The notes below the pieces were generated by a model. That model did not search any database, was not told the DNA's origin, and saw nothing but the letters and a program-made list of their open reading frames with translations. A stretch of 63,264 bases of DNA, the filler included, from Hyphochytrium catenoides (taxonomy: Eukaryota > Protista > Hyphochytriomycota): the NCBI GenBank assembly GCA_900088475.1. It is 8 parts of 8 records of this genome, joined end to end, with 100 filler letters (N's around TTAATTAATTAA, not from the genome) between each part and the next. Parts side by side here need not be neighbours in the genome. Positions count along the whole stretch, not along the records: positions 1 to 30,959 come from FLMG01003117.1; 7 more parts are not named here. One strand, given 5' to 3'. Of this stretch, positions 3,580 to 30,100 are shown piece after piece (position 1 is the stretch's first letter; the number at the start of each line of letters is the position of its first letter). Made by a program: the position numbers and the translations under genes.

Positions 3580-3667
3580 ACCAGCACCATACCAGCACCA
3601 TACCAGCACCATACCAGCACCATACCAGCACCATACCAGCACCATACCAGCACCATACCAGCACCAT
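3580..3667 (+). repeat. perfect tandem repeat (ACCAGCACCAT)x8
   Basis: Eight identical 11-nt units with no spacers. Confidence 0.97.
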
Positions 3668-4203: not shown

Positions 4204-4806
4204 ATGGAACCTCCTGCTAATCCCTCAACAAGCGCTATGAAGACTACTGCCCACTTCAGGAAATGGCCGTGCGTTGAGACGGGCTGTGAAAAGTGGGCAC
4301 ACAAGTCAGGGTACTGCCAGCGGCATGCTCGTATGCAAGGCTTATCAGTGACAAAGAAGAAGAGGTGTTCCGTGCAGGGATGCACGAACCAGGCAGAATC
4401 TAGAGGTCTCTGCGTGCGGCATCAGCAGAGAAAGTGTAAAGAACCTAAATGCAATCGTGGTTGGTCGCGAGCGGGCTACTGTTACCAGCATTGGGGAGCA
4501 ATACAGCTTGCCAAGAACGCAACGGCGTCATCTTCAAACGATCATCAGCCTCAACAAGCCAGTGAAAGAAGCCCGCTTCCTGTAATTGAGGAGGTAGTAC
4601 CACGTGGGCTGAACGATAACAGTCTAGATCAAACTCTAGAGGAGAGGTGTAAACATCTTCAGCAGCAACTACAGGATTCACGACTGGAGTGTGCTCGCCT
4701 GCGAGAACAGCTCTCTCTAACCGAAAGCGAGTTACAGAGGGTTCGGGCTCAACAATACTTGAGTCGTGTAAAAATGGAGCGAAGCGATGGGTGGGCGGGC
4801 GGTTGA
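4204..4806 (+). CDS. zinc-finger repeat protein (WRKY19-like C-x4-C-x9-C-x2-H repeats) with C-terminal coiled coil
   Basis: Three repeats (CVETGCEKWAHKSGYCQRH, CSVQGCTNQAESRGLCVRH, CKEPKCNRGWSRAGYCYQH) are followed by the heptad segment LEERCKHLQQQLQDSRLECARLREQL. Single 200-aa ORF with no WRKY motif. Confidence 0.82.
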   Translation: MEPPANPSTSAMKTTAHFRKWPCVETGCEKWAHKSGYCQRHARMQGLSVTKKKRCSVQGCTNQAESRGLCVRHQQRKCKEPKCNRGWSRAGYCYQHWGAIQLAKNATASSSNDHQPQQASERSPLPVIEEVVPRGLNDNSLDQTLEERCKHLQQQLQDSRLECARLREQLSLTESELQRVRAQQYLSRVKMERSDGWAGG

Positions 4807-8710: not shown

Positions 8711-8747
<37 letters not shown>

Positions 8748-11700
8748 GGGGGAGGAGAGAGAGAGAGAGAGCCATTGGCTGTCCGATGTGGCGTCAAGAA
8801 GCGAGAGAGAAAGAGAAGGAGAGAGAAGACAGAGAGAATTATAAGCAAGATATAGTGAAAAAGAATGACAACTCAAAAGGTAGAGAGGCTCATGGAGTCC
8901 AACCAATCCTGCCCACGCGGAGGGACCAAGACTCAGGGGCACATAGATGTCCGTTGGCCTTGATGACTTAAATAAGGTGGAGGATGTAGGTACTTGGGGA
9001 GCACTTATCAGCAGCATTTACGGCACACCGCCGGTCCTATCTAACCTTAGATACACTGATTCAGATTTACATAGAACTAGATGTCACCATGAGAGCCTTG
9101 ATTCAGTCTGTGTGATGCTTGGGCTGAGAGAGAGTATCCTTGCTCAGTTAACAAAATAGCTCCGACCTGAAAGGTCCTAGACTGCGCTGCTCATTTCCTC
9201 CTGTGGTCTCTCCACACTTTGTTCTTTTGCCAGACGTACTACGTTTGACGTTCAGACACGGCTTCGCACGACGTTGAAGGCTGCCGCCTATCGAGTGTTC
9301 TGCAGGGCAGTAAGGACACTTCCCAGTGAGATTTTGTCGATGGCGACTACTCCTTATCCTGTGCGAGCAACCATTTACGCTAGTTGGGAAAGGATAATGC
9401 GGTCGACAGTTGCAAATAACGGAGAAGAAGTTCACATAGCGGCTTGCTTTCTTTAGTTGTTGCATCTCTACTAAGGAGAAGGAGCTTTCTCCCTGCTGGT
9501 CTACATCTCTCCCCACCGGCTCCAGCCAGCGTATAGCTACGATGAGCGGTACATCTATTATTTTGCTTGAGGGATGATTTTGCGTATAGGTGGTGGTTCG
9601 CGGATCGGAGGGACAGGGGTTACATTCATACCCCTCATGACGAGGAAGACCTTTAATACACCGTCGTCTATTCCGGCCTTCAACATCTTCAGCGTCGGTC
9701 GTCTCGGGAAAGATAATGAGAGTTTCCATTGCCGCTTCAATAGCATGATGGGGCACTGAGACCAACAATAATGGAAGTTGTTGTCCAAGCCTCCGTTTCG
9801 TTGGCCCCATCGGCGAGGCATTGTCCGCCACCACTACTCGGTCGTTGAGGATGGGCCTCACATAGTAGGGGGTCCTTTAGCGGAGGCTGATCAAAGAAAG
9901 CTTCAGCATAGTGCACACAAGTTACCGCCTTTATGATAGAATTCCAAACAAAAGAGAAATCAGAAGCGCGAAGGGGTAAGGTTACATCGTTAGCCCTCCT
10001 CCGTCCGCAAGTTGTTCGATTGAATTGAGAGCTTCCTGTGCCTAAGACCGCGTAGTAGGCACCTTGATTGAGCAGCATGATGATTTCGTAGCCCGAGGCG
10101 GCTGAGTAAGATCGGGGACATTTGGGGCAATGAGACATTATTCCCTACGTTCCCTCTCTGTTTGAATGAATACATAGTCAACAAGAGGTTCACTAGAGGT
10201 TAATTCCGGGCATCGCTCGTTAGTGCAGCAGGCAGCGTCGTTGCTCCCTTCTTTTACGTATTTATTTCACCGTCTCCTGGCTGCGAAGCAGACCCCTCAG
10301 TCCTCGCCCGCTCTACAGACGCCGCACTACTACAAGCTGTTAGTAGCATGCCGTCAGAACCGAATGCCATTTGAGGAGTTCGCAGAGGGGTATACTAGGT
10401 AAGTCTTGGTGGCTGGAGGTGTCGTCCGGCCCGTCCGTGCGGTTATTATCCCACCTCTCTTCTATCCCCTCATACGCCCTCCCTTCATCATGGCCACCTT
10501 TTGTCTTGGTTAGTGACGGCTTGTAAGTCTTCGTCTAGTAGAGACTCTCTAGCCACTTCCTCTGAAGTAAATGTTCTTCAGATTCTGGAGCGCAATTTTC
10601 AGCAGTAACCCTTCTCTTGCTTGCATTGCCGAGTGTGACCACCATGGCCTTTCTTCCCTCCTTCTTCTTTTATTGTTGCTGAAGAATCTCAACTATCATT
10701 GTTGTTCGTTCTCCCATAATGATGGTGGAGGTAGGAGGAGAGATGTTGATGAAGAGATGAAGACTTAGAACAGTGTTATCTTTTCCTCCTCTTCCTCCTT
10801 TTTGAATAAGAAGTATGCGTTGGAAGTAGCTAGCTAGTTGGTTATACAGAAGCAATAATAGTCCTCAGAAGCGCTCGCTTCATCTTCCTTCCTTGTGAAC
10901 CATTCTCCTTGCCATCGTCCGCTTCAGAAAGACAACCAACGCTTCCCAGTCAATACGGAGCATAAGTAAGGAAAGATGAAGCGAGCTACTCGCACGACTA
11001 GTAGTGCATGCGGACGATTAGATGAATAGCTTTGATTAAGGCGCGCCGTGAACAACATTAAGACAGGTAGAATGCAGAGCTTTGGGCTGACAGAAGGACA
11101 AGCAGGTATAGGACAACCGCAGCCATTGGCGACCGGCTGCAACCATGCCTTCCATTATCCACCGCAGTGTACTAGGGTGATATTGAACTTACTTCTCTAA
11201 GCCTGGTCGTTGGACATAAGTAAGGCCGGGTTAAGAAGAAGGTTGAGAGGTCCGTGTCTAGAGGAAGACATGAAGGTCGGCAGCACCCATCAAGCCACAG
11301 GCCGCAGAAGCAATGACAAAGAAAAGAGTCCATCAGATATCATGGAAGAAGGTTAGGAGAGAAGTAGGAGGAGGAAAGGTGAAGAGAAAAAGCTGTGCCC
11401 CCTGCCCTTGCCTCTCCACTATTGCTTGAGCACACAGCAAGTCTGACGGTGGGTGGTGTGGGCACTCTTCTTTATAGCAGGGCAGTGGAGAAAAGAGACC
11501 AAACCTCCTGCAGTTGTGGGATGCACAGTAGAGAAAACGAGCAGGTGCACGACGAAACTTCTTTTCGAGAGGCTGCATGCATCGGTCGGGTCGCTTTTCC
11601 CTCTTTCTCCTATTCAGTGTGTTCGCTCCTATCATTATCTGGTCATGCTGGTGGAATGCCAGGATGGTTCCGCGGTGAAGAAGACGTAGGATTCTTTCTT

Positions 11701-13939
11701 TCTATGATTTGGAGCAAGGCGTGAACAAAGTCTTCGTCTTTCTCTGAGGATTAAAAGCAAAGATCGGCGCCGATGACTTAAACAGAGTTCCCTCTGCTTG
11801 GCGTTCTTAACGGTAGCATCATGACCTTACAAGGCTTGTTGGGAGCTTTCCTTGCCGCGTGACTGAGGGAAGAAGGCGGAAGGAGGCCCTTGACTCGAGT
11901 CTGAAAAGATAGTAGGAGCCGTTCTATAAAATTACTAACTAGCCTGAGTCCTAGACCATCATTTCCTCTTCGCCCGTGCCCTCCCATCTCCTTAAACAGT
12001 GCATCCCATGGCGTTCACAGGCGAGCAGTCTTGAGGTTTGAATGAGGGTAATTAGATCCTCTCGGTAACCGCGCAAGAATAATAGCTGCATGAGTAAGCA
12101 CCCTCCTGCTCTCTCTTTCTTTTTGTCTCTTTCTCCTGGCCTCGTTCTATGGTGCCTTGAACATGTTCATCATAGAAAGAAGTGAGTCCTCTCGGGACCT
12201 CCTGTATGTGACGTTGGTGGCTCTTCTATATCTACTTCCACTGGCTTGCTTGCATTCTTGCTCATAATTCTTGCCATTCTTCTCGTCGTGACCTTCGTAG
12301 ACAAAAAGAGAGACAGAGAAGAACGTCGGTGACGAGTCAGACGAGGATTCGCATTTGGCTTGTACGCTGCTGTTAATATTTGTTGTTCTTCTTCTCTAAA
12401 GCTGACGGAGGCAACCCTTGGCCTAGGTCCTGACTCAGTAGCCATACATGTCCCTAGGCTGACTCTAAAATATCATCTAATACGCTATCCGAGAGCTTAC
12501 CTCCTCCTGCCTCTCTTGGCTACTTTGTACGAGAACGCTGTCTCTTTTGCTGCCCAGTGAAAGAAGATATCCTTAGCAGCGGGACGGGCATGTGGATTAA
12601 CTCTCCTACGGCCATTTTTAAGGCTAACCTTTGTTGTTGCTACTCTCTTTTCCCAGAGCTCGACCGTGTCATTAGGTTCCAACGTGAGTGAGCTCAGCAC
12701 CATCATCCACATCACCGCCCACCAAGCATAGACTAATAATAGATCTATAGTTAGAAACAGTTCGTCTTTAGCGCAATACAGTTTTACGGGCCCAGGGAGT
12801 GCAAGAGACATAAGATACGCACACTTAATTAGCTGTCTGATTCCCTCCGCCCCGCTGTAGAACGTGGATACAGTATCTAACTCCTGCTTTAGAACTACCG
12901 GTACATCTTCATAAGTGATTACCACGGCATCGTACGATGGTTTATTCAAGTCTGTACAAGTACAGGCCTGGTAATTTCAAGCTAGCATCTGCATCCAAGT
13001 CCACTACTACCTGAGACGAGGAATTACGGTACCTGTTACTTATTATGGTCAGAACTGCGCAGTCTACTTGTACTTTCTTTCGTCTCCTGAAATCCTGAGA
13101 ATCTCAGGCCTTCTCCGATACCGTTCTACTCCTGTAGATCTACAAGTAGTCTAAAGACTTGCAACTACTGTCTACAATGTGGTGGTGTGGGAGATTGTAC
13201 TGCCTGGACTTGCACTACCCGTAGTACTTATCTTTCAGTTATTGTATTTATACTTGTAGGTTGTTCCTTGTGATAGAACTGTACAGCTCTAAGTGGAGAA
13301 TAACTTTGAGGATAATACTTTGTGTAGAGGTTAGGCGAGTAGATAAGTTTCTCTGACAAAAGGTACAGGGCACCGCTACTCTACTTGCACAAGTATCCAG
13401 CACGCCATCCAGCCGTGCATGTCAGGGCACTCAGATGTCATTGCCATCCACAACTCATCAGGAAGGGAATGCAGCGAGCGAGGTGTCGGGACAGCAGCGA
13501 CAGGAGTAGAGCCCATCATGACCTACTTGTTCTACTATCATCAGGAGAGCACTCCCACCATCATCATTAGTCGCTTCACAAAGGGAAGTGACGGATGATG
13601 CTGCAGCCCACATAGCCATAGGCTCATGCTTCACTTCTTCTCAACTTCTTCCCTGGTAGTAGGAGCGGCGCGCATGCTCTCAATCAGCGCGTGACGCTGA
13701 GCAGCAGCCATCACAGGCATACATACTGCGGCGCAGCGCCAATTGAGAAAGGTGGCATCGTCCTGTGCTATCCTGGCCTGACACTTGGCATTCTCGTTTG
13801 ATACGGACACCCCACCAATACGCCTTAGCCTCCAGACAGATAGTGGGACGTAGTAGTGCTAATTCGCGGCAGGGTCCAAATATCAGTACCTGTCCGACTG
13901 GAGTCCGTTGCGCTTGACAGGAAGCAAGAAGAAGAGGCA

Positions 13940-15217
13940 ATGAGAGGGAGTGTGAGAAATACTAAGCCCTCCACTGATGGTAACGAGCTCTGGCGAAAGG
14001 ATCCAGGTTGGTCGGATGCGTCTAATCAACCTGGGAGAAGCCTGTCAGTAGCGTTTAGATCGATGATTATGGTTACGCTGTTGGTCTTGGCGCTGACGCT
14101 TGCCATATTCAATTCTTGTTGGCGAGATTCTTCCGATGTCCTACGCGCTCCAGCATTGCAGTATATTCATGGAGACAAACTGACAGAGAGTGCTACCGGT
14201 GGCCCAGCTCTTCGTGCTAGTCCTGCCACAGGTCTCTTGTTGCCTCTGACGTCAACTACTGCTTCTGTTCCAGGCCGGAATTCAGCATCAGCGTGGTGGT
14301 CTAACACAGCGCTGACGGACCCGAAGGTCAGAGTCATCTCCATGATCTCACGTGGAGACTACCAGAGACTCGGAAGCTTTATGGCTCACTGGGACCTCCA
14401 CAACGTCAGTTACTTTCCCAAACCAACGCTCTTCCACGCTGTAGACGTGGCAGGAATCCCCAGAGAAGAAATGTGGTTTAGCAGAAGCGATCAAAGTAAC
14501 TCCTACTATTATAGCAGCTTTGGCGCTTATGGTTGCTTGCTATCTCACCTCCATCTCATGAAGGAGCATGAAGCAGAAAACCAGAACCGCCATGCAGATG
14601 AGCTCGACAAGTACAGCGACTTAGTCATCTTTGAGGATGATGCTGCTTTCATTGACGGCTTTGAGGATATTCTCATAAAGACTCTAAGGGACAACAAACG
14701 AGCTCTCTCGGATTGGGACTTCTTCTACCTTGGCGGCACTGTATGGAGGCCGCCTATGGTCAATGCATCCGCCATGGGCTATTTCAAGTTGGAGACCATG
14801 GGGAACACTCACGCTTATATGATAAGAGGCAAATCTATCAGGAGGATCGTTGAGTACATCGAGTCTAATAGGGATATCCTGCCGATCGATATCGTATACT
14901 CTGACCTGATGGAGAGGAAGATCATGAATGGTTATTCTCCTGGTAAGATACTCTCGGGGCAATTGCAGGATGCTGGTAGCGTGATCAATGCGCGAGAGAC
15001 CAACTTCGCACATGGAGCTCAGAACACCATGACCCTAGGCTGTGGGTTTATGAATATGATTGGAGAGTTCTGCGACCAGTGTGCGGATAAGGCTAGCATC
15101 AAAGGGGCTGCTTGCGGGGCCTGCTGTGGGCCTTATACGTACCGAGTCCGTCACACGGTATTCAACGCGGCCTTAGGAAGTACCTCGATTGTGCCTGGGG
15201 AAGTTGTCAGAGCATGA
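13940..15217 (+). CDS. glycosyltransferase family 25 protein, type II membrane topology
   Basis: GT25 motifs GAYGCLLSH, LVIFEDDA, WDFFYLG, THAYMI and PIDIVY are present, with an N-terminal TM segment (MIMVTLLVLALTLAIFNSCW) and a Ser/Thr/Ala stem. The first ATG is at 13940; intronless. Confidence 0.88.
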   Translation: MRGSVRNTKPSTDGNELWRKDPGWSDASNQPGRSLSVAFRSMIMVTLLVLALTLAIFNSCWRDSSDVLRAPALQYIHGDKLTESATGGPALRASPATGLLLPLTSTTASVPGRNSASAWWSNTALTDPKVRVISMISRGDYQRLGSFMAHWDLHNVSYFPKPTLFHAVDVAGIPREEMWFSRSDQSNSYYYSSFGAYGCLLSHLHLMKEHEAENQNRHADELDKYSDLVIFEDDAAFIDGFEDILIKTLRDNKRALSDWDFFYLGGTVWRPPMVNASAMGYFKLETMGNTHAYMIRGKSIRRIVEYIESNRDILPIDIVYSDLMERKIMNGYSPGKILSGQLQDAGSVINARETNFAHGAQNTMTLGCGFMNMIGEFCDQCADKASIKGAACGACCGPYTYRVRHTVFNAALGSTSIVPGEVVRA

Positions 15218-16926: not shown

Positions 16927-19654
16927 ATGACGACAACCGCGACTCGCCGAAGGCATGTATTCTTCGCTGCTGACTCTCAGGATGAGAAGGACAGTGCCGT
17001 CGTTGCCGCGCTCAAAGCGGAGATGCAGGCCAAAAATATCCGCTACTACCAGCCTAAGCGGGATGAGGACGTCAACACCTCAATCGCGCACGGGATTGAG
17101 GGCGCAAGTGTCGTCTTGGTATTTGCCTCTCCCGCTCTTCAGCGCTCGAAGACGGGGTCTAAGGTTGTCAACTATGCAGACCAGACGAAAACACCTTTGT
17201 TGAATGTCAAGCATCGGCCAGAGTTCCAGCCGACAGACTGGCTGGGTGCCATCTTGGCTCCAGTGGCATCCTGCGCTCCCGCTTGTGACGAGATCTTGAA
17301 TACGATCTCCTCTGTTTTGCAAATCCACATTGCAGCGCTAACAGTAAGTCCTGAAGAGCAGCTGCAGCTTCAGTCAGAGGCACAACTGGATTCTGAAAAT
17401 GCAGAGGACCAGGGTCGTTATTTCTTCTATGGCGGTACGGCGATGGGAAATGTGGACGCCTACTACGGTCACGGTGGCTCTAACTACCCGATGGCTTTTG
17501 AGGTGAGCTCCGTCTACATTATGCTGGATGCAGTGTGTATTATTTGACCACCTACCATTGCGCCCTTGCTCCTTCCTTATTACTGTTCTGACATCACTTC
17601 GTTCTCTGCCCACACTCTCCCCATTGCCCGCTTCTCGCCGTTTCCTTGCCAATTGGCGGTGATGGTTTCTCAAGTTTCTTGGATTGGAGGATGGTAGGGT
17701 CTTTGGGCAAGGCGATGACCAAGTTGGCGCGTTCACCATTGCAGGAAACTATGACCAGGTTTCTCCCGGTGACTGCGGGAATGTGTCCTTCTGCAAGCAG
17801 TACATCGGACGCCACACTGTTTATTACTCGGGAAGCATAAGCCTTGAGGGAGCAACGTGCACAATGCAGGGAACATGGGAGATTCCAAGCGATGGAACAG
17901 TTTTCAGTGATGCCTTTGGGATTACACTCGCGCTTTCGCTGCCATCTTCCGCTAGCCTCCACCCTCAGAAGGGCTATAGCGCAGTGGCAAGACTGCTGCA
18001 GGGAGAAGCACTGGTTAATGGCCATGAACCGAGCGCCACCATGCCGGGAGGAAAGGCCTCGTCTCGTGGCACGCGAGTACTCGTATTATATTGTTCCCCC
18101 CAACACGCTCTCTCTGAGAGAGTCACTGCCGCCCTCACGGCGGCGGGAATTCCCGCTGAACTTCCTGAACTCGATGTCAATGCCATGATCCGTGCGGTAG
18201 CAGAGAATGCCGCAGCGGTTGTACCTCTAATGAGCCAAGCATATCAAGACTCTGCGATAGCCAACAAGGTTCTCGCTTACGCTGAGAGAGCAGGAGTTCC
18301 CATTGTTCCAGTGAAGGCACAGAAAAACTTCACGCAGAGCAGTTGGTTGGGCGTGATCTGCGCAGGAGCTCTCTGGACCCAGATCACGGATGATGACAGT
18401 GCCTTTGATCAGAAGATTAAGGACTTGATCGTGCAGCTCTCAGCTTACACGTCTCCTTCCTCTTCTTCCCTAGCCAACGGCGATTCTAACAATTCGCAGG
18501 TCCTCGTTGACGGTATAAATGCGACTGGTTACTACCTTCAGCAGCAGACAAAGCATCCAATGCGGTTTGACATGTTTGCGATGGTAAACGGGAATATTGC
18601 TGGGCAGGGTGACGATGAGATCGGTCCGTTTGTCATTCAAGGAACCTATCTCCCGGAGCAAGAGCCACAGAGCAGCTACCAGGTCCAATTTGTCAAGCAA
18701 TATCTTGGAAAACACCAGGTGATATACGCTGGAGTTGGAAGAGCAAGTGACGACGGGATCTACCTCGTTCTTCAGGGTACCTGGACGATAGGTGAGTGGT
18801 CTGATGGTTTTGAGCTCCAGTTGCCATTAGAGCGGCAATCTTCGCAGCGAGGCTTGCATATTATGTTGAGCTACCAATGGAACAGTCAAGAAACCGTGAA
18901 GAAAGTGGCGGATCTCCTCAGATCGAGGAATATTCGGATCTGGTTCGACATCTCAGGAGATATGAAAGGGAATATCAACGCGGCTATGGCCAACGGCGTA
19001 GAGAAAGCGGCGGCAGTGGTGAGCTTCACCTCCAGTGCTTATTCAAAGAGTGTCAACTGCCAAAAAGAGCTCAATTATGCCTCACAGCTAAAGAAACAGA
19101 TCATACCCGTTCTCCTAGAGGATGCCAGCACAGCTGACAATTGGCTGCGAAGCATCGTTGCATCACTGAACGCCGTCAACATGCAAGACAACAATCAATT
19201 CAATGAAAGCTCCGATCTTCTTGTCCAAAGGATTGATGCCATTTTGAAGCAGAGGGAGGCCGAAGATGAGTCGTCCCTTCCTGCCTCCAAAGTGACCACG
19301 CGCTTTGAAGGCGGCTCAGTGGCTGGAAAGTACTATCAACAAGGGCAAGGTGTGGACATGTATTTTGAGTTCTTCAGCCTCCGGCAAGGAAGAGTATCTG
19401 GACAGGGAGAGGACCAGATTGGAGTCTTCACTATGGCAGGGACCTATGACAACAGTGGTGCGGCGACCTTCATCAAGCAGTATATCGGAAAGCATCAGGT
19501 GCAGTACGATGGGACCATTAGCTATGACTCTAACGGTGGATTCCGAATGGAAGGGAGCTGGTGGGTAGGCGCATTGACAGATAAGTTCTATCTTCAATCT
19601 CTCACCAGTGCTGCCAAAAAGAAGATGGTCCACGCCGCCAATGGACAGCCTTGA
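16927..19654 (+). CDS. tandem (TIR + beta-rich domain)x3 protein, ~851 aa; exons 16927-17502 and 17675-19654
   Basis: TIR3 is a canonical TIR_2-like domain (HIMLSYQW...IWFDI...MANGVEKAAAVV...YSKSVNCQKELNYA...IIPV); TIR1 and TIR2 are divergent copies. The intron GAG|GTGAGC...TCAAG|TTT restores MAFEFLGLEDGRVFGQGDDQVG, which is colinear with repeat 3 (MYFEFFSLRQGRVSGQGEDQIG). Confidence 0.92.
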
Positions 19655-21328: not shown

Positions 21329-23298
21329 ATGTTATCCACCGGCGGCAAGCCGACGAAGGCTGATAGTCCTCGCAATCAGGCAAACAAGAGGAAGGTTGAG
21401 AATATAGCTATTGACTCCTCTTTGGGGAAGAAAGCCTTCCTCACAGATGAGGCCGCGGCATGGGCGAGAACTTCCATAGACTACATTACGGAAGCTCTCA
21501 TTGATAACAGTTCCTCGAGTTGCCCCATCTATGCAAGCGCCTGCATGCAGCGGACGGCGCCTAAGAGAGATCTTCCTGACCTTCCAATGAGTCCAAAGAT
21601 GGCACAACAGCTCATCCGCGATGAACTCTCTCTAGATGGGAACCCTAAACTTAACATGGCGACCTTTGTCACTACCTACATGGACAAAGAGGCAGAGGAG
21701 TTGATGCTCTCGGGCATGAGGAAAAACTTCATTGATCAGGACGAGTATGAGCAAACCACTGAGCTTCACAATCGCTGTGTATCAATGTTGGCGCGTCTAT
21801 ATCACGCTCCAGATCCTCCTGAACAGGTCCCGTACACGGGCACGGGCTGCATTGGGTCGTCAGAAGCGATAATGCTAAGCGTCCTGGCCATGAAATGGAA
21901 GTGGCGTGAGAGACGCCGAGCACAAGGCAAACCTTGCGACCGCCCTAACATGGTGTGTGGCGCTAATGTCCAGGTCTGCTGGCACAAAGCTTGCCGGTAC
22001 TTCGAAGTGGAATGCAGAGAGGCCTCAGTATCTCCTGACTGCTTGGTTCTGACGGCAGAAAGAGCGAAGCCCTTGATTGATGAGAACACTATCGGTGTTT
22101 GCGCTATTCTTGGAAGCACCTTCAATGGCGAGTTTGAGGATGTGAAAGGGATTCATGACATGGTCCAAGAAGTCAATAAGAAGAATCAGTGGGCCGTTCC
22201 CGTCCATGTAGACGCCGCCAGCGGCGGGTTCATCGCTCCCTTTATCAGTCCAGACCTCCTATGGGACTTCAGGCTGCCCTGCGTGAAGTCGATTAATGTC
22301 AGCGGCCATAAGTTTGGCTTGGTCTATGCTGGCATTGGATGGGCGCTCTGGAGGTGAGAATCGCGGACACTTAACTGTGTGTGGCGCCTCTTTTCATCTC
22401 ATGGTAGAGTCTCAGCGGTCCCTCGTCCTTTGCTCCATGGGCGCTCTTCTTTTTTTGCTCTCATCTGTTCTGCTACCTGTTCAGTTGCCGCTATTTACGC
22501 CTCTTTCTCCACCCTTTGGCTCTAGATGCCCCGCTAACGGCTGTCCTGCATGGCCCTTAGCTCCTCAACCTTGCACCGCTTCCTCTTAGCGTCTCCATGT
22601 AGAAACTGTTTTAATCTTAAGACTTACCTACACTCTTTCTCTCTCGTCGCAGAGAACCGCAGGACTTGCCGGCAGATCTTGTCTTCCATGTCAACTACTT
22701 GGGTGGCGACCAAGCGTCCTTCACGCTCAACTTCTCTAAGAGTGCTTCCACTGTCATTGGCCAGTATTATAACCTGATTCGCCTTGGGAGGCAAGGGTAC
22801 AGAGCCATCATGGAGACTAGCATGAAAAATGCTCAGTATCTGCGTGACCAGATCATAAGGACGGGAAAGTTTCATATTGTGGACAAACAAGACATGCCTC
22901 TCGTGGCCTTCAGCCTTAAAGACCGGACCAAGTTCTCTGAGTTTGACATCCAGGACCGTATGAGACATAGCGGGTGGATTATCCCAGCTTATACCTGTCC
23001 TAAAGGGGCTGAAGACCTGATCATTATGCGCGTTGTCGTCAAGCAGAACTTCTCGCATGACCTTGCGGACGTGCTCGTAAGACACTTGCATCAAGCTATC
23101 GAGCTCCTAGAGCAGCTGGAGAAAGCCAAGAAGCCTCCTACTCATGAAGAGAAACTCCAAGACTCCACAGTGAGAAAGTTCAAAACGGCCCTGGCGACTT
23201 CAAGAGCCACCAAAAAGCTTCTCCGTCACTCGCATTCGACGATGGCCTCCACCATTGACCATCGCTTCAAGGGAGAGCGTACTTCTGGTGTCTGCTAA
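21329..23298 (+). CDS. GAD: glutamate decarboxylase (PLP-dependent), ~556 aa; exons 21329-22353 and 22653-23298
   Basis: Motifs DELSLDGNPKLNMATFVTT, GSSEAIML, HVDAASGGF, PLP-lysine SGHKFGL, FHVNYLGG and FTLNFS are present. A phase-2 GT-AG intron at 22354-22652 joins ALWR-EPQDLP. Confidence 0.97.
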
Positions 23299-27100: not shown

Positions 27101-30100
27101 CTCCTCCCGTCTGTTCCAGGCTTCCTTCTCTCGTCCTGCTCTCCTACTTCTTCGCACTTTCCCGCCCAATATGAGCCGCATACTTTCATCCTCAAAATGC
27201 TCCTTATCATTGTGTGGACTCTCTAGACACCATCCTCTACGGCTCCTGGGCATTCACTCTCTCTACTTATTGCTTTTGTGTATATCTAGAGCTTACCAGG
27301 ACCGCTTGAAGGTTGGCAATGATCTGATGGGCTTCCCCTAGTGCCCTCATAGCAGACTGTGTATACCGATCCACTAGCGACTAGCAGGAACAGAGCACTC
27401 AGGAGAATAACGGTCTGAACAAGGGTGGTCAGACCTATGCCGCCTTTCCGTCCCTTCTCCTTCTGGTCGAGCGCCTAAAGAAGCGACAATACGGGTCAAC
27501 GGGCGTGAGAACTGGCTCCCCTTACAGCGAGAAAGTGGGAGCAGAAGGAGATAAGCAGAAAAAAAAAGCAGCGCCGCACCTGTCCAGCACTCTTGAGCCA
27601 TGCTTCCAGTTTGTCAGTACTCTCTTCTCCATACTTGTCTCTCAAGCCACGGACCATTTCTCTTTCCTTCCCTTCGAAGGATGACAGGATCTCCTCGATC
27701 ATTTCCAGCTTTGAGGGCTGATGCTTTTCATAAAAATCCCGCAGTAAAGCTCTCAAGTCTTCCTGAAGCCGTACGCTGGGCTCTAGGAAACGCTTTCCAA
27801 CGTCGTCAGTCTCTCCTGTCCCAGCGTCTGCTTCTCTTTCACTCCCTGCCATTCCGTTTGTTCCTCGTGTGTCTTCTGACTGTAAGAAGAGAGGAGTCCT
27901 AGTCGTGGAAGAGGCTGGAGTTGCAAGAGTCTTCGTCTCAATGCTTTGGAAGGTGGTCGTGGTCTCACTCTTTATCCAGCGGCTGGTCTCCTCAATCTTT
28001 TGCTATGGAACAGGACAAATGCATGCGAGAGCAGAGCAAGAGAGAGAAAAAGAGAAGGTCAAGGAAGTCGGGTACGCGGCTTATCAAAGATAACAATTCG
28101 AGGGACTAAAGCCTCAACGAAGCCCGGCATACCAGATAGGAGAGAGAGAAGGAGAGAGAGAGATAAGGAAGAAGACAGGGATCGAAACAAGAGAAAGAGA
28201 GAAGGAGAAAGAGTAAAATAGGAACTATCGAAAGGAAATCTTAACTGGAGCGGCCTCCAACTTACCTTTCTAGACTCCAGGACGGTCAGAGACGACGCCT
28301 CATGGGCAACTTCTGGCACGTGGGGACGTGGAGCTGACTGAGGTCGATAAGGACTGGGCGGCTGTGGAGCTGAAGAAGGTGCAACAGTCTTGGGAGGAAC
28401 AAGCGGAGGAGAGGGCTGCCAAACATCTTAGCATTCGGACTAACCACGATACAGTCACAGAGAGAGAGAAAGAGGTAGAAAGAGAGAGTGAAAGAAAAAA
28501 AAAAGGTAGAGAAAAAGGGAGAGGCAGAGGCAAAGAGAGAGAGAGAGAGAGGGAGAGAAGAGGAAGAAGAAGAAAGAAGAAACAACAGGATCAAAACAAG
28601 AGAGAAAAAGGGACCACGAAAGAGAGACACGATAATCTTCGAGAGCTAACTTTAACAACAGAGACGTTCCATCTACCTTTCTAGACTCCAGGACGGCAAG
28701 GGACGGCGCCTCATGGGCAACTTCTGGTACGAGAGGACGTGGAGCTGGCTCAGGTTGATAAGGACTGGGAGGCTGAGGAGCTGAAGAAGGAGGAACACCC
28801 CTGGGCGGAAGAACGGAAGGGAAAGGCTGCAAACATTTTAGTGGTCCGGCTAGATAAGATACAGTCCGAGAGAGAGAGACACACAGACAAGTCCGAGAGA
28901 GAGAGAAAAAAGAAAGAAGGAGCGCTTGAGGGAGAGAAATAGCGAGCGAGAGAAAAAGAGGANNNNNNNNNNNNNNNNNNNNNNNNNNGAGAGAGAGAGA
29001 GAGAGAGAGAGAGAGCATAGCCATGACCCGGAGCGCAACAGGAGAAGACAAGGAAGCTTGGTCACCTCTTCTCCTCCAGCGTCAGGAGTAATGGGGAGAG
29101 ATATGGAGCCGGAGAGATCGGGGGCAACCATGGCACTCTCCTTGCTTGTTCTTCTCTTAAGGCTTGGAGATGTGCTGCCCGAACGCCTACGGAACGAGAA
29201 AGGAAAGAGAGGTCAGACGCCAAGGAGGAGATGGACAAAGAGAAGCTTCCAGGAAGCGTAAAGGAGAGAGAGAAGAGAGAGAGATCGCGAGCTTCAGAGA
29301 AGACGATTAAATACTACGAGAAGTTCTAGAGCATACCTCTGCTGGTTCTTTCTCTCTTCTTTGGACTCTAGGAGGAGCTCCAACCTTGCTGTTGCCTGTT
29401 CATGGAGGTTGTTAATCTCTCCCGCCTGCCGTGCCGACTCCTGGCGCAGAAAGTCTCTCTCCTTGATTATCTCCGACAGCCGCTGCGTCAAGTCCTTGTT
29501 TTGAGTGCGAAGAAACTCTTCTGAGTCCTTCAACTCTCTGCAGTCAATAGGGGAGGACAGACAGCGGGGGTGAGAGAAGAGTTCAAGACAAAGGAGAGAG
29601 AGATTGTAAAGGAAGGCAAAGAGAGGGATAGCGAAGAGAGAGATTCGCCCCTACTTTATATAAATCTGCATCTGCTGTAAGACCAGCATCGCATTCCTCA
29701 GGCGCTCGCCTGGAGAGAGAGAGAGTGAGAGAGAGACAGAGAGAGAGTGAGACAGAGAGAGAGTGAGAGAGAGACAGAGAGAGAATGACGCCCCAGAAGT
29801 CCCTAAGATTTCTTCTGTTTTGCCCGCAGCTCTAACCCTTCCGACCTTCTTTTCCCTCTCTGTCATCTTTGTCCCTGTTCCTTCTCCCTTTCTCTCCCTT
29901 CTCTGTGCTTCTCTCTCTCCCTAGCTCACAATGGGCCCGCTTTTCTCGGCGCGCCTTATTGACTCTAGACGCCTGACCGTCCTTCCTTGTCCCAAGTTCT
30001 CCATCAGTATCGTCTTTCTCCTCTCACCCGGCTTACCATGGGATTTTCTAGAAGAGCGGGACGTGTTGGAGAGGAGAGAGAGATTCAAGCTTGGTTGCTC

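Follow-up and report, generated by a model that had tools for sequence, protein, structure and literature searches.

TIR domains are immune and cell-death enzymes that cleave nicotinamide adenine dinucleotide (NAD+) in bacteria, plants and animals, and the central question for these enzymes is how each of them is kept off and switched on. This question is raised anew by a gene on the plus strand (positions 16927-19654) of a 63,264-nucleotide stretch of the genome of Hyphochytrium catenoides (assembly GCA_900088475.1; the whole stretch, in which eight parts of the genome are joined by filler and positions 1-30,959 come from FLMG01003117.1, is hereafter the window). The gene encodes a protein with three TIR domains, each followed by a domain of an unnamed family (hereafter B), and the family to which it belongs has no recognized oligomerization or sensor domain. 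The sequence indicates that a single TIR (TIR3) is potentially catalytic and that the other two (TIR1 and TIR2) are conserved pseudo-TIRs, and B is predicted to be a small 8-stranded up-and-down beta-barrel (meander). The composite reading of the protein, a TIR effector that cleaves NAD+ and includes two pseudo-TIRs as scaffolds and three barrels as binding modules, has in our estimate about an even chance of being correct.

An open reading frame (ORF) scan of 16927-19654 yielded two long plus-strand ORFs, 16927-17547 and 17684-19654, which we join into a two-exon gene (16927-17502 and 17675-19654), a prediction that we regard as nearly certain:

16927..17502, plus strand: exon 1, 192 codons, with the start codon, TIR1, the linker and strands 1-2 of B1
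17503..17674, plus strand: intron of 172 nt, GT..AG, phase 0, GTGAGC...CTCAAG
17675..19654, plus strand: exon 2, 659 codons and the stop codon, with the remaining part of B1, TIR2, B2, TIR3 and B3

The ATG of the exon 1 ORF is at 16927, and the N-terminus encoded by this exon (..RRRHVFFAA) lines up with the N-termini of the full-length homologs P0005, P0034 and P0037; the gene is therefore complete. GTGAGC starts right after 17502, the AG at 17673-17674 is followed by TTT CTT GGA, and the stop codon is at 19652-19654; exon 2 matches a rotifer homolog with an E-value of 3e-210, and the spliced product consists of 851 amino acids. Splicing joins ..YPMAFE|FLGLEDGRVFGQGDD.. and brings B1 exactly in register with B2 (MRFDMFAMVNGNIAGQGDD) and B3 (MYFEFFSLRQGRVSGQGED), which share M-x-F-[DE], six residues, and then G-x-[IV]-x-GQG[DE]D. 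A related contig (L001), a low-GC eukaryotic metagenome contig on which genes for V-ATPase, proteasome, Ariadne and CNOT11 are likewise split, has an intron at exactly this codon boundary (FPMEFE|gtataa...tgcag|FFRLEK). In addition, about 20 metagenome 'proteins' of ~612 amino acids all start at the intron point of B1; these are exon-2 ORFs predicted by gene finders made for prokaryotes. The B1-TIR2 linker (17960-18070; ..LLQGEALVNGHEPSA..) is ~15-20 residues longer than in all homologs and stays in frame; a second intron was considered there and rejected, given that no convincing splice signals were seen at 17960-18070.

Family-specific hidden Markov models (HMMs) built from the homologs place the domains in the order TIR1-B1-TIR2-B2-TIR3-B3:

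16927..17412, plus strand: TIR1 and linker, degenerate; Pfam TIR_2 25.9 bits, hhalign to the TIR3 profile 99.7%
17413..17502, plus strand: N-terminal part of B1 (strands 1-2); GRYFFYGG..YPMAFE matches YY and M-x-F-E of B2 and B3
17675..17935, plus strand: C-terminal part of B1 (strands 2-8); B HMM E 1.3e-24, HMM positions 19-97
18038..18490, plus strand: TIR2, degenerate; TIR2-specific HMM E 4.8e-60
18518..18826, plus strand: B2, predicted beta-barrel; B HMM E 1.3e-32
18845..19309, plus strand: TIR3, conserved, presumably catalytic; a long C-terminal helix runs into B3
19310..19603, plus strand: B3, predicted beta-barrel; B HMM E 1e-34

A short Lys-rich tail lies between B3 and the stop codon. 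The internal repeats are far beyond chance: within the protein, the B copies are pairwise 37-46% identical (BLASTP E 1e-18 to 1e-20) and the TIR copies 27-37% identical (E 1e-8 to 1e-11). When compared with Pfam TIR_2 (PF13676, cut-off 28 bits), exon 2 scores 93.3 bits over two stretches, corresponding to TIR2 and TIR3, with the best match over TIR3, and exon 1 (TIR1) falls just under the cut-off. The Pfam scan of the protein detected no domain besides TIR_2, and specifically no ARM, SAM, NB-ARC, NACHT, LRR, TPR or WD repeats; no transmembrane segment was found (the top Kyte-Doolittle 19-residue mean, 1.5, is within a TIR strand), and an HMM scan found no second copy of the gene in the window. 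An earlier reading of this DNA (hereafter, the original prediction) had proposed a strict threefold TIR-B layout lacking NB-ARC/NACHT, LRR, TPR, SAM and transmembrane segments, and this proposal is borne out by the HMM order and by the Pfam and Kyte-Doolittle results; the B motifs that it listed, namely YY, M-x-F, GQG[DE]D-x-[IV]G-x-F, F-x-KQY[IL]G[KR]H-x-V-x-Y-x-G, G-x-W and D-x-F, were all found.

The three TIRs differ from one another. Conservation within the protein peaks in TIR3 (mean pairwise identity 0.58, 31 invariant columns), and the conservation of TIR1 (0.50, 7 invariant columns) and TIR2 (0.47, 7 invariant columns) equals that of the barrels. The positions that correspond to the catalytic glutamate of TIR enzymes are as follows:

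19067..19069, plus strand: codon of the putative catalytic glutamate of TIR3, E657 in spliced numbering, motif NCQKEL
17164-17166, plus strand: Val at the catalytic-Glu position of TIR1; hhalign to TIR3 places K-V over K-E
18269-18271, plus strand: Val at the catalytic-Glu position of TIR2; hhalign to TIR3 (99.4%) places IANKVLAY over NCQKELNY

The TIR3 glutamate is invariant in 16/16 and 38/38 homologs (NCxKE), and the equivalent position of TIR1 and TIR2 is occupied by Val, Leu or another non-acidic residue in every homolog aligned. Because only TIR3 keeps the glutamate and TIR1 and TIR2 carry Val, we predict one potentially catalytic TIR and two pseudo-TIRs per chain. The BB-loop region of TIR3 (WFDIxGDMxGNINxAMAxGV) is nearly invariant as well; it has low confidence in the structural model and is likely flexible. 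TIR3 and B3 are modeled as one body (predicted local distance difference test score (pLDDT) 85.9, predicted template-modeling score (pTM) 0.82), of which residues 1-141 resemble in structure the TIRs of RPS4, RUN1, SARM1, AbTir and Hydra TRR-2, with template-modeling (TM) scores by target of up to 0.84; RUN1, SARM1 and AbTir are NADases. This fold test covered TIR3 of the three TIRs. A search of the PDB sequences with the TIR3 profile gave Cat1 as the sole significant match (E 2.4e-6), with the glutamate aligned over the Glu of CWDEL; TIR3 as a single sequence had no match among the PDB sequences, so that the profile was required. PADLOC gave a SAVED-TIR match (4e-7), and both the SAVED-TIR and the bSEFIR matches cover the TIR part alone; the score for NCBIfam ThcB4 (Thoeris) was 14.1 bits, far under the cut-off of 220. 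A search for relatives of the TIR3-B3 unit in prokaryotes and viruses confirmed none.

Experimental precedent for TIRs of the TIR3 type comes from a preprint in which 154 eukaryotic TIRs were expressed in E. coli (10.64898/2026.04.20.719644). A TIR from Latimeria (H2ZXV5, 296 aa; Table S4, row 145), with the motifs HIMLSYQW..GNINDAMAAGVE..NCKKELNYA..WLG, was active and depleted NAD+ with no cyclic ADP-ribose (cADPR) isomer, and a TIR from Clupea with the same motifs (A0A6P8EVF3, 236 aa; row 146) was active and produced cADPR; both belong to the cluster represented by A0A821G592 from Rotaria socialis, and in both the authors mark residue 74 as catalytic (10.64898/2026.04.20.719644). By our own count on the ordered sequence, residue 74 of the Latimeria TIR is the Glu of NCKKE, and a hand count gives ~47% identity to TIR3 over ~108 positions. 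Because such similar fish TIRs are active in E. coli, NAD+ cleavage by TIR3 appears likely, albeit not certain.

The protein is a member of a conserved family. A search with exon 2 identified 52 relatives, and HMM scans of all fetched proteins recovered the order T1-B-T2-B-T3-B in 22 full-length homologs, 33-52% identical to the window protein, whose sources are bdelloid rotifers (Rotaria, Adineta), Hydra vulgaris, the rhizarian Paulinella chromatophora, the choanoflagellate Salpingoeca infusionum and EukProt transcriptomes. Every TIR position is best recognized by its own position-specific HMM, and therefore the triplication predates these lineages. The T3-B3 tree places the window protein outside the rotifer clade, in a basal polytomy that it does not resolve. 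Bdelloid rotifers encode many paralogs, and some of those in Rotaria contain an extra N-terminal domain, either ART (P0022, P0028) or SIR2 (P0039), both of which are other NAD+-using enzymes. The family is already in public databases as 'uncharacterized' proteins, its named members being annotated merely as uncharacterized or 'TIR domain-containing'. Text searches of the literature found no paper on a triple TIR-B architecture, and in the literature searched neither this architecture nor the pseudo-TIRs nor B is described. Thus, what had been proposed as a new protist module is undescribed in that literature, as proposed, but is not confined to protists, given that the family is also present in animals, namely Hydra and bdelloid rotifers.

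The B domain could not be assigned to any named family. Pfam contains no family that matches B in the window protein, in 134 B-containing proteins or in 49 isolated B domains; NCBIfam and PADLOC yielded no family match either, and the best match of the B profile among the PDB sequences has an E-value of 0.53. Two candidate identities were rejected: a match to Csx19 (E 0.0047) in 1 of the 49 B domains was taken as chance, and none of the 49 matches Pfam Avidin (PF01382) even at E 1. The AlphaFold model of B3, computed with 49 aligned B domains, consists of eight consecutive antiparallel strands (pLDDT 92.8). In a Foldseek search, B retrieved avidins, streptavidin and designed barrels, all of them weakly (E ~2e-3, TM-score 0.5-0.6), and an exhaustive structure aligner gave Z-scores of 9-12 for designed barrels, OmpA-type barrels, Cap15, avidins, YceI and GID4/Gid10 (for Cap15, Z 10.3 with a root-mean-square deviation of 2.3 Å over 91 residues). 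Both early statements on B, that it belongs to no named family and that it is a beta-barrel, thus agree with the database searches and with the model, respectively, and the structure search that had been suggested for it returned generic barrels only.

Numerous residues (in B3 numbering) are conserved across the bacterial, TIR-less eukaryotic and TIR-linked B domains, namely M17, G31, G33, D35, G38, F40 and G44, together with F54, K56, Y58, G60, H62, V64, Y66, G68, G82, W84 and F93; the F/K/Y/G/H/V/Y/G positions of the bacterial domains were fixed by the search pattern, and the GxGxDxxGxF block is independent of that pattern. In an up-and-down barrel, the hairpin turns 1-2, 3-4, 5-6 and 7-8 share one end, and according to the strand limits of the AlphaFold model and the strand order alone, D35, Y58 and H62 are at or beside such turns. 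Because these three residues adjoin same-end hairpin turns, the model hints at a conserved site at one opening of the barrel.

The distribution of B is far wider than that of the triple architecture. When 1.84 billion cluster representatives (50%-identity clusters) were searched with the B profile, 1,930 proteins were retrieved at E<=1e-3, 490 of these at E<=1e-10; details of architecture come from the best 150 of the ~1,930. Of the proteins fetched, 97 have a B-B tandem and no TIR, which makes this the most frequent architecture; others string together three to eight copies of B, and those that combine TIR with B form a minority. Hydra, too, has TIR-less B-B and B-B-B proteins. The fusion partners of B include U-box/RING, B-box (in Mytilus), MIP aquaporin, DnaJ, PLAT, C2 and myosin head domains. 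In TRIM-like proteins, the C-terminus is usually the target-recognition domain, and in RING, U-box and B-box proteins B occupies the position of target-binding domains. We also note that the Mytilus B-box proteins P0078, P0203 and P0204 carry a B-B tandem at the C-terminus. A Paenibacillus 'cadherin' (P0188), in which a short part of the profile matched and was repeated 11 times, was treated as spurious.

In bacteria, structure-based Atlas matches (TM-score 0.82-0.86) pointed to ~120-aa proteins of Planctomycetota and Verrucomicrobiota. A degenerate DNA pattern for F-x-K-x-Y-x-G-x-H-x-V-x-Y-x-G was run on the GTDB genomes and found 32 sites, against ~9 expected by chance according to our own estimate; 29 of the 32 encode true B domains (HMM E 1e-5 to 1e-19). 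The bacterial B proteins (L003-L034) consist of a single domain, are roughly 100-200 aa long and show no obvious signal peptide; their hosts are mainly Gemmatales, Isosphaeraceae, Pirellulaceae and Verrucomicrobiota, with additional cases in Robiginitomaculum, Alcaligenaceae, Planktothrix and a Bacteroidales metagenome-assembled genome. The signature in Planctomycetota and Verrucomicrobiota is FPSGxWxGF..GIWGTWE..GGFHIWP, and the overall phyletic pattern is that of eukaryotes plus the PVC (Planctomycetes-Verrucomicrobia-Chlamydiae) superphylum. No conserved neighbors or operon of the bacterial B genes were found in the GTDB loci, where the adjacent genes encode an MqnC/CofH-like radical SAM enzyme, AlaRS, a GT4 glycosyltransferase and planctomycete cytochromes. 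A location of these genes in defense islands, a possibility raised by the original prediction, was rejected, the neighbors being unconserved and housekeeping-like with no defense-island signal. The survey of domain partners with the B HMM, envisaged at the same time, showed that most B proteins lack a TIR; B is thus not specific to TIR proteins, and the idea that it is immune-specific gains no support.

How could such a protein work? In SARM1, the plant TIRs and AbTir, the active site is completed by TIR-TIR contacts via the BB loop. Under the composite reading, the protein would be a cytosolic chain of three rigid TIR-barrel units in which TIR3 hydrolyzes or cyclizes NAD+ and, because catalytic TIRs need TIR-TIR contacts, TIR1 and TIR2 would serve as intramolecular non-catalytic partners that scaffold and complete TIR3 or else restrain it. 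The three barrels would be binding modules for a ligand or a target, and their engagement could change the packing of the TIRs or drive intermolecular assembly, resulting in NAD+ consumption or signal production. That B is a binding module at all we put at roughly even odds; that it gates TIR3, as had been suggested at the outset, is a tentative extension and, on balance, doubtful. The setting might be immunity or regulated cell death, a guess made because TIR enzymes act in these processes elsewhere. A still more specific version appears to be a long shot, namely a single-chain TIR assembly in which the pseudo-TIRs give the partner surfaces, which other TIR enzymes gain by oligomerizing via SAM, STAND or filament formation, and the barrels are receptors of small ligands, possibly nucleotide- or NAD-derived, that switch TIR3 on. 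If true, such a single-chain assembly with a ligand-switched TIR3 would be a new mode of TIR NADase regulation and would give the first function to an unnamed barrel domain shared by eukaryotes and Planctomycetota/Verrucomicrobiota.

Several observations weigh against the composite reading. The matches of the B model in the PDB are generic 8-stranded barrels among which no single known family stands out, and the placement of the conserved residues at one barrel end follows from the order of the strands alone. The bacterial gene context ties nothing of B itself to defense. The ART and SIR2 fusions of rotifers could be merged gene models. With respect to catalysis, the glutamate is necessary but insufficient alone for activity. 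Most Glu-bearing animal TIRs were inactive in E. coli, with 12/61 active (10.64898/2026.04.20.719644).

Among the alternatives, a purely structural role of B deserves attention. B could be a spacer or self-association module that senses no ligand, the protein being an NADase that is always competent, or a TIR scaffold regulated through its expression level or by a second protein. B is mostly found in tandem (B-B, B-B-B, up to 8 copies) with no enzyme domain beside it, as in repeat scaffolds, most of the conserved positions are glycine and aromatic residues that look structural, and small 8-stranded barrels, with designed barrels as the top matches of B, can have a filled core without a cavity. 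However, Asp, Lys, His and Tyr residues whose deduced position is close to one barrel end are kept from bacteria to animals, in RING, U-box and B-box proteins B is fused where the substrate is recognized, and in bacteria it is a free-standing single domain. We consider this explanation unlikely.

Two other readings retain the barrels or the TIRs in different roles. In a SARM1-like metabolic or stress sensor, the barrels would bind an endogenous metabolite and cause NAD+ depletion and cell death, with no pathogen sensing. We regard this scenario as quite improbable. Against it stand the lack of ARM and SAM domains and the many paralogs in bdelloid rotifers, some of them fused to ART or SIR2, which is seen more often in conflict systems. 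In its favor, the TIRs belong to Pfam TIR_2 with SARM1 TIR structures among the matches, the gene is single-copy in the window between ordinary metabolic genes, the context of bacterial B is of the housekeeping kind, and the family shows strong conservation across distant eukaryotes instead of rapid diversification (T3 mean pairwise identity 0.58). A non-enzymatic adaptor like MyD88/MAL, in which all three TIRs are interaction platforms and the TIR3 glutamate is structural, would fit the absence of this residue from 2 of the 3 TIRs, and many Glu-bearing animal TIRs were inactive when tested; nevertheless, the TIR3 glutamate and BB-loop region are invariant across animals and protists, and the closest tested TIRs are active in a Glu-dependent manner. 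We hold the adaptor to be very improbable. Regardless of which reading is correct, the triple-TIR-B family is a conserved and tractable case (Hydra, choanoflagellates, rotifers) with one catalytic-type and two degenerate TIRs per chain, and B accounts for ~1,900 sequence clusters absent from Pfam, so that naming it would annotate thousands of 'hypothetical' proteins.

Elsewhere in the window, a 453-aa ORF on the same strand upstream of the TIR gene (13856-15217, plus strand) has a weak match to Glyco_transf_25 (E 7.5e-6; 26.4 bits, cut-off 24). Downstream, 21329-22357 and 22666-23298 (plus strand) are the two pieces of a gene for a pyridoxal-dependent decarboxylase similar to glutamate decarboxylase; the consecutive ORFs match positions 8-280 and 288-375 of Pfam Pyridoxal_deC, which implies an intron of ~300 nt. 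An Atlas query with this decarboxylase returned clusters with bacterial labels alone and was uninformative as to the source of the DNA. A 200-aa ORF at 4204-4806 (plus strand) contains a WRKY19-type zinc-finger motif (PF24906, E 4e-7) and overlaps a 222-aa ORF on the opposite strand. Simple repeats are present at 3580-3667, 8713-8771 and 29713-29788, in the form of a perfect 11-mer ACCAGCACCAT repeated 8 times and two GA-rich microsatellites, and the segment 28001-29000 shows a strong purine skew (GC skew 0.35, AT skew 0.53).

Comparison with the known systems helps to define what kind of protein this might be. Tandem TIRs as such are found in mollusc Toll receptors, which have more than one TIR domain per chain; these are LRR-transmembrane proteins of the TLR clade that contain two adjacent TIRs of another TIR subfamily with no barrels between them (PMC4929906). 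The fish and rotifer TIR cluster (A0A821G592) shares with TIR3 the motifs HIMLSYQW, GNINxAMAxGVE, NC(K/Q)KELNYA and WLG, but the fish TIRs tested were isolated domains of short proteins, and the triple architecture, the pseudo-TIRs and B are undescribed there. Avidin and streptavidin, the top Foldseek matches of B, are likewise 8-stranded up-and-down barrels of ~110 aa, but the similarity is at E 2e-3 or weaker with 10-17% identity, the conserved motifs are different, and there is no match to Pfam Avidin.

The barrel of Cap15, a CBASS effector, is a receptor of cyclic-dinucleotide second messengers in an immune effector. B resembles it as an 8-stranded minimal barrel, but neither its rank nor its score is better than those of designed barrels or OmpA, the likeness is at the level of the fold with no sequence match, and Cap15 has N-terminal transmembrane helices, which the window protein lacks. 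Closer in logic are the proteins that combine a sensor with a TIR. SARM1, like the window protein, has a TIR of the TIR_2 type whose catalytic Glu sits in the alpha-C helix and would share with it the union of a sensor and a TIR NADase in one polypeptide; it differs in its ARM-SAM-SAM-TIR architecture, in contrast to which the window protein has no ARM or SAM domain, three TIRs of which two are degenerate, a beta-barrel as the candidate sensor and no recognizable oligomerization domain. Cat1, a CARF-TIR NADase of type III CRISPR systems, and SAVED-TIR proteins couple a ligand-binding domain to a TIR effector by the same logic, but the CARF, SAVED and SLOG domains of Cat1, SAVED-TIR and Thoeris ThsB systems are missing in the window protein. 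Because ARM/SAM, CARF, SAVED, STAND and transmembrane features are absent, we assign the protein to none of the SARM1, Cat1 and SAVED-TIR families; by analogy, it would work like a sensor-coupled TIR NADase of the kind that these three families represent.

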